DNA of 64,000 bases, taken from sequence record OQ992561.1. The stretch is one strand, 5' to 3'. This document shows, piece by piece, positions 1 to 25,215 of this stretch. The translations under genes and the position numbers were made by a program. Every line of letters starts with the position of its first letter. The stretch's first letter is position 1. The notes under the pieces are model-generated. The model was not told the DNA's origin. It made no database searches and saw only the letters and a list, made by a program, of their open reading frames with translations.

Positions 1-146
1 AACAACTTTAGACTGGATTCATAAAGAACCCCCATCTAAAGAGGTTGTGTAAAAAATAGTAAAAGAAATACACTATTCTATGTAGTTCCTTTACGATTGC
101 TCTTTTATCTTAGTTTCAGTTTTGCTGAAGAAGTACCAATGAGATA

Positions 147-167
147 CCCTCCCCTGATCGGGGAGGG
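147..167 (+). terminator. Intrinsic terminator hairpin
   Basis: CCCTCCCC-tgatc-GGGGAGGG followed by TTTTT. Confidence 0.75.
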
Positions 168-193
168 TTTTTGACATCTAAGAGGAAAATATA

Positions 194-574
194 ATGTGCA
201 AACAACATCGTGTAGTATCTATGAAAGTTACATGCACGCAAGCTCGCTATCCGATCGGTCTGTGCGATCTCGGATTTGATAATGCTGCTGATGCTCGGCA
301 ATATCTACTAGATGTCGTTGAGTACAATATGGATCGTCTCCACCCACAACATGCTAATACATTCCAGCTACAAAATCTACAAGACGGGTTCGTAGTATCC
401 TACGATATCGAAAAAGATGGATCCGTTTATCTTCGGTTAACACTGGCGGTTGTAGCTTATCAATCAATCGATCTTGAGTTGGGGGTTACCGTTAAAGAAA
501 ATGAAGGGATCAGTGTTGTAATCAAAAATTGGATCAATGGTGATTATACTGCGGGGAACAAATACTTGCAGTAA
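194..574 (+). CDS. Hypothetical protein, 126 aa
   Basis: ATG with GAGG SD upstream; bounded by two terminators. Confidence 0.8.
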   Translation: MCKQHRVVSMKVTCTQARYPIGLCDLGFDNAADARQYLLDVVEYNMDRLHPQHANTFQLQNLQDGFVVSYDIEKDGSVYLRLTLAVVAYQSIDLELGVTVKENEGISVVIKNWINGDYTAGNKYLQ

Positions 575-677
575 TACCATATGTAAAGAATACCCAAATC
601 GGGATCTCCCGGACTATCTCCCTTCAGCGTTCCCGTCCGCAAATGAAGGTGCCGCCGAGATCCCACCTATTGATAAT

Positions 678-697
678 GCCCTCCCTTCGGGGAGGGC
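678..697 (+). terminator. Intrinsic terminator, UUCG tetraloop
   Basis: GCCCTCCC-TTCG-GGGAGGGC-TTTATTT. Confidence 0.85.
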
Positions 698-740
698 TTT
701 ATTTCGCTTAAGCCTATTTATTTTATTATAAGGAGTGAAA

Positions 741-1472
741 ATGACATATATCGTAAATGATGGTAAAGTCATGATTGCAGACTGCCTATTAATTGAGCGG
801 AATAATGCAACTGATAGCATTGGGCGACTTCCAGTATTAGATAACGGTTATATTGATCTAACTGCTAAAGCTGAAGGTGTAGATGTATATTACAATGATT
901 GCCACAAGATAATTTTTCATCCGACAGTTACTTGGCAAGGTAAACGTGTTAAAACTATGGCTTTTGCTGGAACTATAGATAATGTTTATGATCTATTGAA
1001 TGCCCTTACCGCAGGTGTTGATTTAGCTGATTGGTTTAAAGTTGAAGTAAATATCTTGCCAGTCATAGAACGCAGGTTGTTTAATGGTAATACTTCTATG
1101 ATGTTCACTATGGAGAATGGTGACATATATACAGTTATTCTTAAAGACATGGGTATCAACATCACCAAGAAAGATTGGGCTCATTTGGGTAGTGGTGTAG
1201 ATGCAGTTAATAGTGTACTTGAGTTTATCCCTAATTGTAATGATAATGGATCAACCAAACTAACTGCACTTGAAGCATTTGCTATTGCATGTGCACATAC
1301 TACTACTGTAAGTCGTAAATTTGATTATTACATCCATGCTACAGGTGAGTACAAGCAAAATCAAGAACTATCAACTAAACAACTAAAATGGATACTAGCG
1401 CGCATTCAAAAGCGGATGGATCTTACCCGCATTTTCAATGACCGCGAATATGCCAATAACATATGGGGTTGA
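741..1472 (+). CDS. HslV/proteasome beta-subunit-like Ntn hydrolase (putative threonine protease)
   Basis: AGGAG SD favours ATG741, giving N-terminal M-T-YIV. Motifs NDGKVMIAD, HKI, AFAG, NGDI, HLGSG, LTALEA run colinear with HslV motifs. Confidence 0.65.
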   Translation: MTYIVNDGKVMIADCLLIERNNATDSIGRLPVLDNGYIDLTAKAEGVDVYYNDCHKIIFHPTVTWQGKRVKTMAFAGTIDNVYDLLNALTAGVDLADWFKVEVNILPVIERRLFNGNTSMMFTMENGDIYTVILKDMGINITKKDWAHLGSGVDAVNSVLEFIPNCNDNGSTKLTALEAFAIACAHTTTVSRKFDYYIHATGEYKQNQELSTKQLKWILARIQKRMDLTRIFNDREYANNIWG

Positions 1473-1477
1473 TTTGT

Positions 1478-1993
1478 ATGAGTAATTCTAATATGGATAT
1501 GCTATATTACACTAATGTAAATTGGGAGCAATATTTTCATCATGTGAAACAACGTGCAGATGATACTGTTAAAGTAATGTATAAACCTGAATATGAAGAT
1601 CTTATTGATGAAGCATGTAGGCCATTAATTAAATGGTTTAATCAATTTACCAATGTTGCAACTATTTATTGCTGTTCAGGCCATGTTGATGAAGAAACTG
1701 GTGGTAGCCCTGGATACATTAGTCTTTTATTTAAAGATACCAATGCAGAGAATTCTGCAATGCGTTTATTGCGTGAAGCAATGTGTAAGGGGCGTGAGTG
1801 TAAGATCCCATTCGAAATTGAACTGGGGGCTTATTTCGGGCATCTACATGAGACCATTGATCAGAATCACTGGGTCGCCAATCTAGTCATCCGCACCAAT
1901 AGCTACAAACGTAAAAATACGTATGATCGCTATTGGCATCGTCTTTACAATATCATAACAACATGTAATACTGAGGGTTTATACACCGTCTAA
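1478..1993 (+). CDS. TYW3/Taw3-like motif protein
   Basis: IDEACRPLIKWFNQFTNVATIYCCSGH resembles the TYW3 ID..I..L...N......T.SSCSG motif. Confidence 0.5.
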   Translation: MSNSNMDMLYYTNVNWEQYFHHVKQRADDTVKVMYKPEYEDLIDEACRPLIKWFNQFTNVATIYCCSGHVDEETGGSPGYISLLFKDTNAENSAMRLLREAMCKGRECKIPFEIELGAYFGHLHETIDQNHWVANLVIRTNSYKRKNTYDRYWHRLYNIITTCNTEGLYTV

Positions 1994-2161
1994 AAAATCT
2001 GAGATAATTTAATGAATGATATTAAAAATACATTATTAGTTAGATTAAAGAGGAAACAAAAAGCTAAGCGTATAGATAAATTACAAAGACTAGGTTTATG
2101 GTTTATTCTATTGCTATGTGTATCTAATCTATTTGTCCAATTAATAAAAGGTATATTCTAA

Positions 2162-2842
2162 ATGGCAGAAAAGCTCAGTTTTGCTGATATATTTAAGATG
2201 GCTAAAGAGGAAAATGTTAAGCTTGAATTGCATTGTCTAATTGGTACTCGACCAGTTAGGGGTCTTATTAAAAGTTTAAACTTTAATTCAATCAGACCTG
2301 ATATATGTGAATCTGTTAATTTATATGTAAATGTATTTTCTAAAGTAGTAGAGGCTAGAGTAGATCTATCGAGCACTACTGCTGATTATGGTTGCTGGAG
2401 GATGACTCCAGAAACCAAGAAATATGTAGATAGTAAACATAACTTACCAGAAAAACTAGATATCACTAATCCAGATATCGTTAGAAGTAATATTAATTAT
2501 TATCTCAGTTTACCTACTAAGGAACGCACTGAGTTATTTAATAAAATAAATAATCCCAATGTCATTAATGCAATAAACAAAGAATGGTCTAAAATGGTTG
2601 TAGAGTATTATCAATCTGAGATCGATTCGTTTATTGAATTAATTGATTTCGATCATGTCCTTATCAATAAGTTCATGGCATTTAACTGGATGGATGATCT
2701 GTTTGAATATGCTTTAAATATCCCATTAAAACAAACCAATACAGTAAATGAAGGTACCTGTTGCTTACTGGTTCACAAAGATAAAAAGGCAACATATACT
2801 CATTTTACTGATATTAAAAATCTTATCAAAGTAAGTGTATAA
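2162..2842 (+). CDS. Hypothetical protein, 226 aa
   Basis: Long ORF with phage-like codon usage, ending at a convergent terminator. Confidence 0.8.
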   Translation: MAEKLSFADIFKMAKEENVKLELHCLIGTRPVRGLIKSLNFNSIRPDICESVNLYVNVFSKVVEARVDLSSTTADYGCWRMTPETKKYVDSKHNLPEKLDITNPDIVRSNINYYLSLPTKERTELFNKINNPNVINAINKEWSKMVVEYYQSEIDSFIELIDFDHVLINKFMAFNWMDDLFEYALNIPLKQTNTVNEGTCCLLVHKDKKATYTHFTDIKNLIKVSV

Positions 2843-2854
2843 TTACGGCATAAA

Positions 2855-2876
2855 CCCCTCTCCATGTGGAGAGGGG
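2855..2876. terminator. Bidirectional terminator at a convergent junction
   Basis: CCCCTCTCCA-tg-TGGAGAGGGG. Confidence 0.8.
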
Positions 2877-2903
2877 ATATGTCTTTATTTTTTTTATTTA
2901 AAC

Positions 2904-3293
2904 TTACTTAGAAAAATCTTCTACTGGAATATCATCCAGCCAATCATTAAGTAGTTTAAATTGATGAGGGTGTTGCATCTTAGTAACTTTACCATACTTA
3001 ACACTAACTGCTTTACCAGTAGACACGGCAAGATCAACTAGTTTCTTTTCATATGCATTAAACTCATCATACCACCGAGTATGAATAAGTTTTGCTAGGC
3101 GATCGTAAGCCGTCTTTCGATAATGATCTTCTTGTTCGCGACGTTGTTCGTCAAGTAGTTCTTTTTGACGTTGTTCTTGCTGACGCTTTTCTTCTTCCTT
3201 TTTCTCTTTCTCTAGTCGTTTCTTCTCAGCAAAATATGATAGAACCGGTAGTTTGAAAAGTAGGCTTAGAAGTAGTTGAAAGAATTGTTTCAT
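2904..3293 (-). CDS. Hypothetical protein with hydrophobic N-terminus and charged coiled-coil segment
   Basis: Likely start MKQFFQLLL (GAGGA SD upstream); E/K/Q/R-rich helix. Confidence 0.75.
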   Translation of the reverse strand: MKQFFQLLLSLLFKLPVLSYFAEKKRLEKEKKEEEKRQQEQRQKELLDEQRREQEDHYRKTAYDRLAKLIHTRWYDEFNAYEKKLVDLAVSTGKAVSVKYGKVTKMQHPHQFKLLNDWLDDIPVEDFSK

Positions 3294-3373
3294 TAGTATT
3301 TCCTCAGTTTGATTAAATAGATAATTTACAAATGGCAATCCGCCTAGTTACATACTAGATAGCTGTAAGTATT

Positions 3374-3784
3374 TTAATCCGTTACAATGTCTGGATAACG
3401 TTCATCAATTAATGATTTTCTATATGCAAACTCACTCACCTCTACTTCTAACTTCTCTTTAGTTGCATATGTGGTGCCGATTACAATAATTGAATCATTA
3501 TTAATTGATAACTCTACATCATTATCTTTTCCAAACACTAATTTAAAAACAGTATTTAATTCATCTAATTGATTTTGAATGGACACTGCATCATCATGGA
3601 TTGCCCTAGATGGTTCTTCTAATAAACCTTCTAGTATTTTATAAGACTTTATAAAAAGAGTATCATTAAAATCTTCTTTTAGCCATGCTAATTCAAGTGT
3701 ATACAAATCAACTACTCTATTAAGATTTGAAGTAGTTATATCTGTTTTCCATTCATAACCTAGATAGTTAGTTTCATTACTCAT
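3374..3784 (-). CDS. Hypothetical protein, 136 aa
   Basis: ORF with AGGAG SD. Confidence 0.8.
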   Translation of the reverse strand: MSNETNYLGYEWKTDITTSNLNRVVDLYTLELAWLKEDFNDTLFIKSYKILEGLLEEPSRAIHDDAVSIQNQLDELNTVFKLVFGKDNDVELSINNDSIIVIGTTYATKEKLEVEVSEFAYRKSLIDERYPDIVTD

Positions 3785-3826
3785 TATAAACTCCTTTGAT
3801 TAATACATATTAAATAATCTGGAGTA

Positions 3827-4003
3827 TTATTTCTTTGTAATACGATAACCAACTGACCATAAATCTACACGGACGAAACCTTTTCCATCATGTTGGCCGT
3901 ATAAACATACACGCAACATTCTATTGTCTGGCTTCATATCAATTCGTGTTATCTCAAATTTATTAGTAATATATTCTTGAATGATAAATAATAGATGACT
4001 CAT
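3827..4003 (-). CDS. Small hypothetical protein, 58 aa (MSHLLFIIQEY...), below the ORF-track cutoff
   Basis: Hand translation; AGGA SD upstream; fills the gap between genes. Confidence 0.6.
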   Translation of the reverse strand: MSHLLFIIQEYITNKFEITRIDMKPDNRMLRVCLYGQHDGKGFVRVDLWSVGYRITKK

Positions 4004-4034
4004 TTTATATTTTCCTGATTAATGACAAACATAA

Positions 4035-4054
4035 GCCCCTCCATATGGAGGGGC
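4035..4054. terminator. Terminator hairpin downstream of tRNA-Thr
   Basis: GCCCCTCCA-ta-TGGAGGGGC. Confidence 0.75.
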
Positions 4055-4132
4055 AGTATGATTTACTGAGTCTTTCGCGTTCAATCCCATCCTAACTAAT
4101 ATATTTAAGAATAGTTTAAACCTCAGTAAATT

Positions 4133-4209
4133 TGGTGCCGCCACTCCGAATCGAACGGAGGACCTACGCATTACAAGTGCGTTGCTCTACCTAGCTGAGC
4201 TATAGCGGC
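4133..4209 (-). tRNA. tRNA-Thr(UGU)
   Basis: Cloverleaf GCCGCTA...TGGCGGC-A-CCA, anticodon TGT, encoded CCA. Confidence 0.95.
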
Positions 4210-4260
4210 GAAATCTTCTACATATAGTGTATATGGAAGTATTATTTTATTTATTTAATA

Positions 4261-4803
4261 TTAAATAAATAACCAACGCTTATCATATTCAACTAAGTCA
4301 TTGAATTCAATTTTCTCGAATCGCCATGACTGAACAGTAGTTCTGATTAGATTACCTGACTTATTAACAATATAACCTTGCATAGTATCAAATAACTTGT
4401 CCGATTCACCGAGAATAAATATTAGATACACATCATCTGTATTTTTGGTATGCATTGATTTTAATTTATAAATACATGGCCTAAAGGAATCGTAATTTTT
4501 ATAATATTCTTTGATTTCTAGAGCAGCATCAATCATCATCTTGGCGCTATTCTGAATGCCATTATTAAGTAGATAATTATTAAGCTCTTTTAATGAATCA
4601 TCTGTCAGTGATGCTTCGATATGTTCTTCACTTATAGGGTCGCTATAAACTAGTTTATTAATAGCTGAATTAACAATATTTAGTTTATCAACATCATAAG
4701 CTACTAATGTTTGCTTGCCAACATTTATTTTTAATACTTTATTTGAATTATTAATAAAGTCGTCTAGATCTAGTGTATTAAAATGAAAAGCCATTTGAGT
4801 CAC
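4261..4803 (-). CDS. Hypothetical protein, about 177-180 aa
   Basis: Long ORF; start uncertain (GTG or downstream ATG). Confidence 0.75.
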   Translation of the reverse strand: MTQMAFHFNTLDLDDFINNSNKVLKINVGKQTLVAYDVDKLNIVNSAINKLVYSDPISEEHIEASLTDDSLKELNNYLLNNGIQNSAKMMIDAALEIKEYYKNYDSFRPCIYKLKSMHTKNTDDVYLIFILGESDKLFDTMQGYIVNKSGNLIRTTVQSWRFEKIEFNDLVEYDKRWLFI

Positions 4804-4914
4804 CTTTATGTTTTCCGTAGTGTTAAATTTTATTAACGCCCGGTTTCTAGTTGAGTTATATGTAGGGTTAACCTACAAATAATAATGACTTTATGTATAT
4901 TTTTACTTATAAAT

Positions 4915-4938
4915 AGACCCCTCTATATAGAGGGGTCT
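4915..4938. terminator. Terminator ending the virion accessory cassette
   Basis: AGACCCCTCTA-ta-TAGAGGGGTCT. Confidence 0.8.
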
Positions 4939-4952
4939 TATGCCGTATAAAG

Positions 4953-5813
4953 TTATTTTAGTATAGGTCTAAATACAAAAATCACATCAACTTCATTAGC
5001 TATGTCAACATCATATTCAATACCATCGTTATCGATAGCAACTAACATGGTATTATTTCTTGGAGATGGTGTTGATGTGAGGAACTTTACATTATCTGGC
5101 AGTGATAAATTAGTTACCGGGGACTGGTCTGTTTGGATGCCTGTCTGAAAAGCTGTACCCATATAACGCTTGAATTCGTTTAATGTTGGAACATATACCT
5201 CCCACTTAACGTCCTGCATATCTATTATACGTCCTTGTTGAGTTGGACCACCTATATGTTCTATCAATTCACTCGGCCATACATCGGACATATCTCCAGA
5301 CCGTCCCATGTACCCCGCATGGTAAACAGCCACAGCGACAGCTTTCTCAATACTAGATGTATCATGAAAAGCTACATACTCATTATCAATAAAATAAGGG
5401 GTTGGAGCCTCATCAAGATTCATTCCTGGGATGCTATATGGCGAAGAACCAATTGGTCTAAGGGTTGGTCTATTTTCACCTTTGTATGACTTTGTCAACC
5501 TGGCATATTGTCCATCACCGGCTTCAAGCTTTGTATATCCCAATACACTTTGCCATTTACTACTTACACTAAGAGTACGCATTGGTCCTGTATAAGCTAA
5601 TTGACCAAATATATCCTTATATTTTAAGTTCAACCAAACGCATGTATCTTCAGGGTATCTGGATGGCCAGAATCCTGCTATTAAATCCCAATCATAGTAA
5701 TAGTGGGGTGGTAGGTTATTGTAATCCCAAGGTATCGCATTGGTATACGACCAAAATGTAACGATCGGTGTAGAACCAGGCCAACCTCTAACATTTTTAA
5801 GAGTGATGTACAT
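4953..5813 (-). CDS. Putative virion protein, paralog of the FN3 plus lectin-like family
   Basis: Start MYITLK overlaps the upstream stop (TAATG); colinear weak similarity to three neighbours. Confidence 0.65.
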   Translation of the reverse strand: MYITLKNVRGWPGSTPIVTFWSYTNAIPWDYNNLPPHYYYDWDLIAGFWPSRYPEDTCVWLNLKYKDIFGQLAYTGPMRTLSVSSKWQSVLGYTKLEAGDGQYARLTKSYKGENRPTLRPIGSSPYSIPGMNLDEAPTPYFIDNEYVAFHDTSSIEKAVAVAVYHAGYMGRSGDMSDVWPSELIEHIGGPTQQGRIIDMQDVKWEVYVPTLNEFKRYMGTAFQTGIQTDQSPVTNLSLPDNVKFLTSTPSPRNNTMLVAIDNDGIEYDVDIANEVDVIFVFRPILK

Positions 5814-6667
5814 TAATTTACTCCTGATTCTTGGATAAAATTTAATATGGGTTTCCAATACCAACTAACATTAGCATCAATAGTTGGGTTAAAAGTGGTA
5901 ATGGTTGATGACCCATACTTACTCAGATCCTTAAATGCTCTAGTTGAATTCGCACCTACTACAGTCATAATTACCCTGACATCATCTGCATTTTTATTAA
6001 CCTGATCACTAATTGACCGGATCATTGATTTTCTAGGGTAATCAGCTGGTAGTGTATATGGTCCAACAAACCGACCATCCATAACTTGCATATAGAACGA
6101 AGTTGGCAATGATGGGACATAAAAAGAATATTTACAATTACCTTTAACTATAGTTCTATTATTATCTACATTATTAATTAGCTCAGATAATTTGTCTATC
6201 GGTATCTCGATATAACCCATATATGGGAGAAAGTAAATATCTGATTTATGTTTAATTTTTGTCCATTGATCAGTCCAATTTATGGCATTTTCCGATTGCC
6301 CATTAAACATCATTAATAGATCTTGAAGACTAGGAAGCTCCGGACTAGTTACCCTATCTAACAATGCAGCTCCATCTGCTTGCATCATAGGTTCTAAGAA
6401 ACCACCTGGTCCATATTGCGAAACAGCTTTAAATGTAAATACTGGACTAATGGCTGTGTCGCCGCCTTCTCTTACAGTCCTAATGCGATAATCGTAAACA
6501 TTACCAATTACCACATCACGATCAATAATAGCTGTCGTGAATCCGTCTAGTTTCTGGATTGGTTGGTTTATAGGAGTATCCGGAATAGGTGTACCTGATA
6601 ACTCGCGGTATACTTCAATACTTGTAATTGATCTAGAATTAGGATTCCTAATTTTAAAGGTAATCAT
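5813..6667 (-). CDS. Putative virion protein, N-terminal FN3/Ig-like domain
   Basis: IEVYR...D.DV..G..YDYRIR FN3 pattern followed by YGPG linker. Confidence 0.7.
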   Translation of the reverse strand: MITFKIRNPNSRSITSIEVYRELSGTPIPDTPINQPIQKLDGFTTAIIDRDVVIGNVYDYRIRTVREGGDTAISPVFTFKAVSQYGPGGFLEPMMQADGAALLDRVTSPELPSLQDLLMMFNGQSENAINWTDQWTKIKHKSDIYFLPYMGYIEIPIDKLSELINNVDNNRTIVKGNCKYSFYVPSLPTSFYMQVMDGRFVGPYTLPADYPRKSMIRSISDQVNKNADDVRVIMTVVGANSTRAFKDLSKYGSSTITTFNPTIDANVSWYWKPILNFIQESGVN

Positions 6668-24567: not shown

Positions 24568-24723
24568 ATGAAAGCAATTGTAATGATTATTATCGGTATG
24601 GTTATGGGTGCCACTATTGTTTATGGTGGGACTTACGAAGCACCTAAAGTAAAGAAAGATGCTGAAGTTATCCTCGGTCATCGCATCGCTCCTAATGGCG
24701 TTGAAATTCTCGTTACCAAATAA
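24568..24723 (+). CDS. 51-aa single-TM small protein (MKAIVMIIIGMVMGATIVYGG...)
   Basis: Hand translation; AAGG SD. Confidence 0.7.
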   Translation: MKAIVMIIIGMVMGATIVYGGTYEAPKVKKDAEVILGHRIAPNGVEILVTK

Positions 24724-24749
24724 TCACTGCTATTAAATGGAGAATAATT

Positions 24750-25118
24750 ATGCTTAAAGATAATGTAGTCATTAATGTCAGCGACCTCGTTGAAGAGAAT
24801 GGCAAAACTGTACATGAGAATAATTTGGCTAAAAACCATAATATCGCTATTGGCGAGTTGGTAGAAGATGTGTATTCAGGTATCCGTCTTTATGTTTTTG
24901 GACATGGGCGGGATTGCGATGGTACACCATTATATCACCTTACTGCCGATAAAGATATTATTGGTGAAGAAATAAATCGGGGTATTCCAGATCTTCAGAA
25001 ACAACATATAGAAATATGGTTAGATGGAATTACCTATGGTAAGGTCCTTTGGAACTATACTTCCGAAGATAATCTGCGTATTGTAAATTATCCTCAACCA
25101 CCCACGGCTGCTGTATAA
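24750..25118 (+). CDS. Early hypothetical protein, 122 aa
   Basis: GGAG SD. Confidence 0.85.
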   Translation: MLKDNVVINVSDLVEENGKTVHENNLAKNHNIAIGELVEDVYSGIRLYVFGHGRDCDGTPLYHLTADKDIIGEEINRGIPDLQKQHIEIWLDGITYGKVLWNYTSEDNLRIVNYPQPPTAAV

Positions 25119-25158
25119 AAGCGGAAGGTCGATTGGGTGAACTCACTCTAGACTAAAA

Positions 25159-25215
25159 GATGGGTCTCTTCGGAGACTCCATCCCAATGTATCTTGGAAA
25201 GGATGCATTGGGATG
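25159..25215 (+). promoter_or_regulatory. Structured 5' leader with two overlapping hairpins
   Basis: GATGGGTCTC-TTCG-GAGAC(T)CCATC and a 14-bp stem CATCCCAATGTATC/GATGCATTGGGATG. Confidence 0.55.

Follow-up and report, generated by a model that had tools for sequence, protein, structure and literature searches.

Proteasome-type peptidases of the T1 family, which is represented by the 20S proteasome beta subunits, HslV, Anbu and BPH, are N-terminal nucleophile (Ntn) hydrolases in which Thr1, Lys33 and Asp17 are regarded as the catalytic triad. In bacterial HslV (ClpQ, MEROPS T1B) the N-terminal threonine is exposed by removal of the initiator methionine, without a propeptide. Peptidases of this type are also scattered across many jumbo phages, and phage-encoded proteasome- or HslV-like proteins already constitute a known category (PHROG 1040; several GenBank records; PMC7823757). 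Here we analyze gp289, the ortholog of the phiKZ gene PHIKZ289, located in a 64-kb stretch of DNA (hereafter the window) that corresponds to the final 64 kb of Pseudomonas phage ANB1 (OQ992561.1), a member of the phiKZ group of nucleus-forming jumbo phages. We consider it quite probable that gp289 is a divergent Ntn peptidase of the T1 family (proteasome-beta/HslV/Anbu superfamily) with a predicted hydrolytic activity, and that it probably serves as an accessory protease.

The closest described phage proteins belong to the short 'peptidase HslV family' (PHROG 1040), exemplified by pSal-SNUABM-04 ORF1, SPN3US gp1, phiEaH2 gp185, an Elvirus protein and gp29 of Klebsiella phage BUCT_49532. Like gp289 they are phage-encoded, many of them by jumbo phages, and they share with it a Met-Thr start, Asp14, the lysine, the A-G loop and the Gly-Ser-Gly motif. 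They differ from it in size (150-180 amino acids) and in lacking both the insert at residues 23-46 and the C-terminal helix and tail; in addition, they retain a proteasome-like D-x-x-T-G-G where gp289 has (T/S/D/C)-x-x-V-S. The two families are not connected by BLAST. Because the own best PHROG of gp289 is 25842, of 'unknown function', we treat gp289 as a sister group of PHROG 1040 and not as a member. Searches of the literature found no functional study of phage HslV-like proteins.

Compared with bacterial HslV, gp289 has the same Ntn fold, in-register counterparts of Asp17, Lys33, G-F-A-G and Gly-Ser-Gly, and a predicted exposure of its threonine by the same route; it is longer (243 versus 175 amino acids) and has no adjacent hslU. 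It cannot be classified as HslV proper since it has no match to the HslV model, carries a large insertion and extension and is not linked to hslU. Its length is similar to that of 20S beta, Anbu and BPH proteins (200-240 amino acids), from which it differs by the absence of a propeptide and of Anbu-type operon neighbours; no alpha-subunit gene was found in the window. Overall, HslV is not a nearer relative of gp289 than 20S beta or Anbu are, and the data do not single out the T1 branch nearest to gp289.

Among nucleus-forming jumbo phages phiKZ serves as the model, and of its roughly 370 genes most are without an assigned function. What is new here is the T1 assignment of one of them, which our direct searches did not detect and whose product has a distinct architecture. 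One early accessory gene of phiKZ thereby gains a concrete and testable biochemical identity and, provided that its product is active, a route for degrading host or defence proteins would be open to the phage.

The gp289 gene and its family

Positions 1-6000 of the window correspond to ANB1 214928-220927 (100% identity) and share 90-99% identity with other phiKZ-like phages. The features of the region are collected in Table 1. The open reading frame (ORF) of gp289 ends at TGA1470-1472 on the + strand and has two candidate starts, GTG735 and ATG741, the latter giving a protein of 243 residues that begins with M-T-Y-I-V. The initial annotation had favored ATG741 on account of a Shine-Dalgarno sequence, a choice that is now corroborated. 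The AAGGAG motif lies five bases before ATG741 and overlaps GTG735, which therefore cannot use it as a ribosome-binding site, so that ATG741 is the supported start. RefSeq places the start of PHIKZ289 identically (263329-264060, 732 nt), and the M-T pair recurs in all homologs of the alignment described below. The protein is 98.8% identical to PHIKZ289 (NP_803855.1).

Orthologs were found by tblastn in 51 phage records; the 40 of these that were listed carry the labels 'hypothetical protein', 'phage protein' or 'PHIKZ289', or no annotation. The family is small, with 16 representatives within 1.84 billion clustered proteins and six clusters in a second large protein search, and neither search returned an annotated distant sequence that would bridge it to another family. 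Where the size is stated, full-length members are found on contigs of jumbo-phage size or on pieces of such contigs. One metagenomic homolog bears the automatic Joint Genome Institute name 'HslVU peptidase subunit'.

Table 1. Features of the gp289 region and related loci (positions in the window unless another reference is given)
Feature	Position	Strand	Remarks
Terminator-like GC-rich hairpin and T-run	678-704 (hairpin 678-697)	+	8-bp stem with 7 GC pairs, then TTTATTT; between the gp288 and gp289 orthologs
Putative Shine-Dalgarno sequence AAGGAG	730-735	+	Five bases 5' of ATG741; read from the sequence
gp289, T1-family (proteasome-beta/HslV-like) peptidase homolog, PHIKZ289 ortholog	741-1472	+	243 amino acids; 27.4 kDa minus Met1
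Thr2 codon ACA	744-746	+	Predicted N-terminal nucleophile; equivalent to HslV Thr1 (via A4; global hhalign)
Asp14 codon	780-782	+	Equivalent to A4 D14 and to Asp17 of HslV/proteasome beta
Family-specific insertion, residues about 23-46 (about 24 residues)	807-878	+	Separates Asp and Lys of the predicted triad
Lys56 codon	906-908	+	Equivalent to A4 K30 and to catalytic Lys33 of HslV
A-F-A-G, residues 74-77	960-971	+	Equivalent to the HslV G-F-A-G loop (Gly45-Gly48)
G150-S151-G152	1188-1196	+	Equivalent to Gly-Ser-Gly, Gly123-Ser124-Gly125 of HslV and 128-130 of the proteasome
C-terminal extension, about 45 residues	1335-1469	+	Absent from HslV; predicted strand 203-209, helix 212-225 and flexible tail
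PHIKZ290 ortholog	1478-1993	+	Five bases past the gp289 stop codon
PHIKZ291 ortholog	2162-2842	+	Final gene ahead of the next terminator-like hairpin
Terminator-like hairpin	2855-2876	+	9-bp stem with 7 GC pairs; end of the putative gp289-gp290-gp291 unit
PHIKZ286, classical AAA ATPase with BCS1 N-terminal domain	L001:2357-3880 (phiKZ 259685-261211)	Same strand as gp289	Pfam
gp287, by locus	L001:4244-4894 (PHIKZ287); L003:5393-6040; L004:5342-5989; L005:5339-5986; L007:5397-6044

Homology to the T1 family

The kinship of gp289 with T1 peptidases becomes visible when profiles are compared with profiles through an intermediate family. Three alignments were used: A1, of 17 gp289-family proteins; A4, of seven short phage 'HslV family' proteins (from pSal-SNUABM-04, phiEaH2, pEa_SNUABM_9, SPN3US, Gungnir39, BUCT_49532 and an EL-like Elvirus); and A3, of genuine HslV from Escherichia coli, three Firmicutes and three other gamma-proteobacteria. 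With hhalign, A1 matched A4 with a probability of 97.5% (E 7.4e-12) over 148 columns from M1-T2 onward, and A4 matched A3 with a probability of 97.7% (E 2.5e-12) over 144 columns. The first link was controlled by randomization: its real score of 79.8 compares with at most 18.2 over 30 column shuffles and with 14.8 for the reversed alignment. The A4 profile also produced 110 matches at E<=1 against the PDB, and the best 60 of these 110 were all proteasome beta, BPH or HslV.

The direct path is much fainter. A larger HslV profile of 84 sequences was assembled from 80 genome loci plus Firmicute sequences, because a search with E. coli HslV gave only sequences at least 86% identical; A1 matched it weakly, in the same register (P 0.0014, score 29.0; shuffles <=22.4). 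As a hidden Markov model (HMM), the same 84 sequences scored the gp289 ORF at E 5.3 among the 97 ORFs of the window, which is noise. A phmmer search of gp289 against the PDB gave no match, and the A1 profile reached HslV there at E 0.7 only, ranked under transcription activator-like (TAL) effector repeats. These TAL-effector (Hax3) matches were rejected as relatives, being an artefact of summing over repeats: they are weak, fall on every Hax3 repeat and involve the segment GSG..V..V...LTALEA..A of residues 144-180 (nucleotides about 1170-1280). The sole direct hint came from PHROG 1040, which matched residues 1-216 of gp289 at E 5e-5. Taken alone, neither the motifs matched by eye nor the HslV HMM is significant, and significance is reached via the intermediate phage family. 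On the profile alignments gp289 is judged homologous to the T1 family.

These alignments also allowed the motif pairs on which the initial annotation had relied to be placed. It had matched six segments of gp289 by eye with HslV, five of which turn out to be in register: NDGKVMIAD/NGHVVIAGD, HKI/KKV (Lys56/Lys33), AFAG/GFAG, HLGSG/AIGSG and LTALEA/LSAREI. The remaining pair, MFTMENGDI/LIITGNGDV, is displaced by one beta-strand, as hhalign aligns MMFTMEN with ALLAVAD and DIYTVIL with SLIITGN.

Predicted fold

An AlphaFold2 model of gp289, computed from the 17-sequence alignment, has a mean predicted local distance difference test (pLDDT) score of 88.9 and a predicted template modelling score (pTM) of 0.82. 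It opens with a hairpin at the N-terminus and further strands, after which come two helices, four strands, another two helices and two strands; this core order is that of proteasome-type subunits, and beyond it lie an additional helix at the C-terminus (212-225) and a disordered tail. Foldseek retrieved 456 PDB matches at E<=1e-3, the best 50 of which are all 20S alpha or beta subunits, HslV or Anbu. The archaeal beta subunits 1pma and 1j2q rank first by E-value (about 1e-7), Staphylococcus aureus HslV (6kui_A) matches at E 4.8e-6 and Pseudomonas aeruginosa Anbu (5lox) with a template modelling (TM) score of 0.51. In the BFVD database, the same fold is predicted for other phage proteins, from Psa21, Noxifer, Vibrio phage USC-1 and PhiPA3 (gp331), and a matching protein of Caulobacter phage CcrBL9 is named 'proteasome subunit beta'. 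By AlphaFold2 and Foldseek, the gp289 model matches the alpha-beta-beta-alpha Ntn sandwich of the proteasome type, with the expected order of strands and helices; the lack of such a sandwich would have counted against the initial annotation. Transitive homology, the model and the invariant triad described below together uphold its central proposal, namely an HslV/proteasome-beta-like Ntn threonine peptidase homolog in a nucleus-forming phage. Both fold and homology are well supported.

Predicted catalytic residues

The M-T pair stands at the aligned start of all 17 homologs, at identities to gp289 down to about 27%; it opens the protein in 16 of them, and in P0018 it is preceded by seven residues. 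The whole A1 alignment (27-78% identity) holds 13 invariant columns, which include Thr2, Asp14, Lys56, Gly77 and Gly150. The threonine following the initiator methionine and the lysine, both singled out by the initial annotation, are therefore kept in 17 of 17 homologs. Residue 74, at the head of the A-F-A-G loop, is variable within the family (A, S, T, G or V). That gp289 keeps an intact Thr/Asp/Lys triad, as predicted from these alignments, is well supported.

Family-specific architecture

Two segments distinguish the gp289 family from its relatives. The insertion between the triad aspartate and lysine corresponds to a gap of about 22-25 columns with respect to A4 and HslV, and the model shows no regular strand or helix at residues 23-46. 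It replaces the segment around Lys28 of HslV, part of the pocket that receives the HslU tail. At the other end, the tail that terminates the C-terminal extension (residues 226-243) is modelled with low pLDDT. It carries a Tyr237-x-Asn239 motif, with Tyr237 present in 16 of 17 sequences and Asn239 in 15 of 17, and Y-x-N forms the extreme C-terminus of four homologs. Its position on a flexible tail suggests that the motif may dock to an adjacent subunit or a partner protein.

Expression and dispensability

PHIKZ289 is transcribed early, its protein is detected in infected cells and the gene is dispensable on strain PAO1. Its mRNA reads amount to 1, 74.5, 219, 348, 488 and 550 at 0, 2, 4, 6, 8 and 10 min of infection (Gerovac et al. 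2024, PMC10914614), a rise from 2 min onward that makes it an early gene. The protein was detected by gradient profiling (Grad-seq) with a log10 iBAQ (intensity-based absolute quantification) value of 9.86 and carries no flag as a virion structural protein in the corresponding table (Gerovac et al. 2024, PMC10914614). It is also listed among the proteins detected in the source data of a size-exclusion chromatography-mass spectrometry study (Fossati et al. 2023, PMC10449902). A transposon-sequencing preprint on phiKZ reports distinct insertion sites in PHIKZ289, 12 within its central part and 28 gene-wide (PMC12676376). The gene lies within the largely dispensable orf184-304 region, where the authors suspect genes for host interaction or anti-defence (PMC12676376). 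Since transposon insertions were recovered in these published pools, orf289 mutants should be obtainable. In the supplements of an antisense-oligomer study PHIKZ289 appears in RNA-seq rows only. Literature searches on gp289 or PHIKZ289, and on phiKZ in combination with HslV or Ntn hydrolase, turned up no paper giving the gene a function, and two recent jumbo-phage reviews make no mention of such a protease.

Predicted activity and alternative explanations

If gp289 is a peptidase, its Met1 would be removed by the host methionine aminopeptidase, as in HslV where a threonine also follows the initiator. The alpha-amine and hydroxyl of the freed threonine would then hydrolyse peptide bonds together with Lys56 and Asp14, and the subunits would probably form rings around the active sites. 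A closed chamber requires an unfoldase if it is to handle folded proteins, so that three routes can be envisaged: gp289 may act alone on peptides or unfolded chains, with host HslU, or with a phage AAA ATPase, for which the nearest candidate would be the Bcs1-like PHIKZ286. The location in the dispensable orf184-304 region and the early expression make a conditional role in host takeover or counter-defence likelier than an essential step. That gp289 cleaves proteins, forms rings, works with host HslU or degrades defence proteins is in each case inferred.

Several observations weigh against an active T1 peptidase. At E<=10, neither gp289 nor any of the 17 homologs matches PF00227, the curated Pfam model for T1 membership, or indeed any Pfam family, and a search of NCBIfam with gp289 gave no match, the HslV model included; the homology is visible only from profile to profile via the intermediate family. 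The TM-scores of the model against solved structures are only 0.4-0.57, modest values that would fit a diverged core bearing an insert plus an extension. The second-shell catalytic residues, as read from the alignments, are partly diverged: position 151 is Ser in nine of the 17 homologs (this phage included), Ala in four and Cys in four; the counterpart of proteasome Asp166 is Thr in this phage and Asp in five of the 17; and at the counterpart of Ser169 a Val is invariant, as is the Ser after it. In Grad-seq, PHIKZ289 peaks in fraction 3, 57% of it is in the pellet, and its signal in fractions 1-2 exceeds that of host HslV (PMC10914614). Host HslV and HslU likewise peak in fraction 3 (PMC10914614), so that these profiles do not point to a particular oligomeric state of PHIKZ289, and neither do the SEC-MS data (PMC10449902).

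The partner ATPase is a further difficulty. The initial annotation had seen none in the window, which was confirmed, as no HslU-like or other AAA gene occurs within these 64 kb; PHIKZ286 lies just past the left edge. No HslU-like gene was found within 8 kb of the gp289 homolog at five related loci either. A tblastn search with the HslU-like gp116 of phage RAY returned only 11 Pseudomonas records, the three listed being ClpX of the PA5oct type, from a collection holding about 47 phiKZ-like records; phiKZ-like phages thus appear to be devoid of an HslU-like gene. PHIKZ286 itself is not linked to gp289 in distant relatives: no homolog occurs within 8 kb, and Psa21 carries it at a distance of about 40 kb.

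Chief among the rival readings is a pseudo-peptidase or scaffold, in which the proteasome-type fold would act without catalysis, be it as a ring, an adaptor or a decoy, for instance by sequestering host HslU or another host factor, in structural likeness to inactive proteasome subunits. The replacement of Ser151 by Ala or Cys in eight of the 17 homologs and the lack of conservation of the Asp166 counterpart are in its favor, as are the large insert and the conserved flexible Y-x-N tail, which resembles a docking element, and the sizeable pellet fraction, which suggests association with large structures. We nevertheless regard it as unlikely, since Thr2, Asp14 and Lys56 are invariant in all 17 sequences, among so few invariant columns and at such low identities, and a protein retained for its structure only would not be expected to keep exactly the catalytic triad together with the Met-Thr start.

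Less probable still is an Ntn hydrolase of the amidase or acylase kind, which would cleave an amide of non-protein nature, or some other small-molecule bond, instead of polypeptides. Ntn folds accommodate many chemistries, the family as a whole shows no unfoldase partner linked to the gene, and hints of RNA or tRNA functions occur nearby, namely in gp290, in a tRNA-Thr gene and, in relatives, in an RtcB ligase gene. On the other side, the listed profile and structure matches are all to T1 proteins (proteasome, HslV, Anbu, BPH) and none to another Ntn family, and the Thr/Asp/Lys triad is the T1-specific arrangement. Finally, a chance resemblance or convergence of fold, which the absence of significant matches when HslV, Pfam and the PDB were searched directly by HMM and phmmer could have suggested, is effectively refuted by two independent profile-profile links of E about 1e-12 each, clean shuffle controls for A1-A4, a high-confidence model with 456 significant Foldseek matches (the best 50 all proteasome, HslV or Anbu) and catalytic residues in register.

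The divergent T1 peptidase therefore stays our preferred explanation. A bolder extension of it, which we hold to be rather doubtful, would make gp289 a phage-specific proteasome-like chamber fed by an unfoldase, either PHIKZ286 or host HslU engaged via the insert or the Y-x-N tail, and devoted to the early destruction of particular host proteins, such as defence or takeover targets. Were it true, a nucleus-forming phage would encode an ATP-dependent machine for degradation.

Genomic neighbourhood and candidate partners

Two strong terminator-like hairpins flank gp289, gp290 and gp291 (Table 1), a layout that suggests a three-gene unit. Five terminator-like sites were counted in the gp289 region, versus 1.2 expected from shuffled sequences. 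The gp290 protein has a weak Pfam match to TYW3, a family of tRNA wybutosine methyltransferases (E 0.0015-0.002, under the family cut-off). A tRNA-Thr gene is annotated a few kb downstream in the records matching positions 1-6000 of the window, and an RtcB tRNA ligase is encoded about 5 kb from the gp289 homolog in relatives.

The PHIKZ286 gene is positioned 2.1 kb upstream of gp289, which places it about 1.4 kb outside the window on the left. Its product matches the Pfam models PF00004 (AAA, 61.5 bits) and BCS1_N (43.7 bits), both over their cut-offs. The early mRNA kinetics of PHIKZ286 match those of gp289, and in the published Grad-seq data its protein is found in fraction 5 and in the pellet. 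ATPases of this type occur in 156 phage records, mostly of jumbo phages, including Psa21 and RVTF4, both of which also carry gp289 homologs.

Of the neighbours of the gp289 homolog, gp287 (217 amino acids, 48-51% identity) alone is conserved alongside it across four distant jumbo-phage loci, always about 2 kb upstream and on the same strand. It has no match in Pfam or the PDB and is unrelated to A1; an AlphaFold2 model of a distant homolog (pLDDT 43) is too poor for interpretation or search.

Other jumbo phages do encode HslU-like ATPases, such as gp116 of Erwinia phage RAY (L008:1353-3059), reported to be nucleus-localised, and ORF121 of pSal-SNUABM-04, which shows that HslUV-type components can form part of jumbo-phage genomes. 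In RAY, gp116 was considered as an HslV-like protein and discarded, being the HslU-like ATPase instead; gp117 and gp118 were likewise rejected since, read by eye only, they display neither an N-terminal Thr nor HslV-like motifs. Phage pSal-SNUABM-04 (locus examined, 103180-107877) has two HslV-like genes, ORF1 and ORF116, the latter lying 2.4 kb upstream of the ATPase gene ORF121, which is annotated 'putative DnaA protein'. ORF116 was set aside as a relative of gp289, as it has no match to A1, whereas ORF1 does. Contrary to the notes of the record, current Pfam misses PF00227 in both ORF1 and ORF116.

The genomic setting of short HslV-like genes is variable. In Erwinia phage Gungnir39 (roughly 49 kb) the gene (24699-25160) sits between those for head-tail adaptor and head closure, in a structural module, unlike gp289, which occupies an early accessory region of phiKZ. 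In BUCT_49532, a phage of similar size, it is flanked by hypothetical and DUF551 genes. The EL-like Elvirus phage IR-QUMS-PaBa1 encodes a short peptidase of the A4 type (142835-143383), and its reference phage EL is described as being without approximately the region that orf184-304 spans in phiKZ (PMC12676376). Different forms of T1 peptidase are thus present in nucleus-forming Pseudomonas phages that are related to each other.

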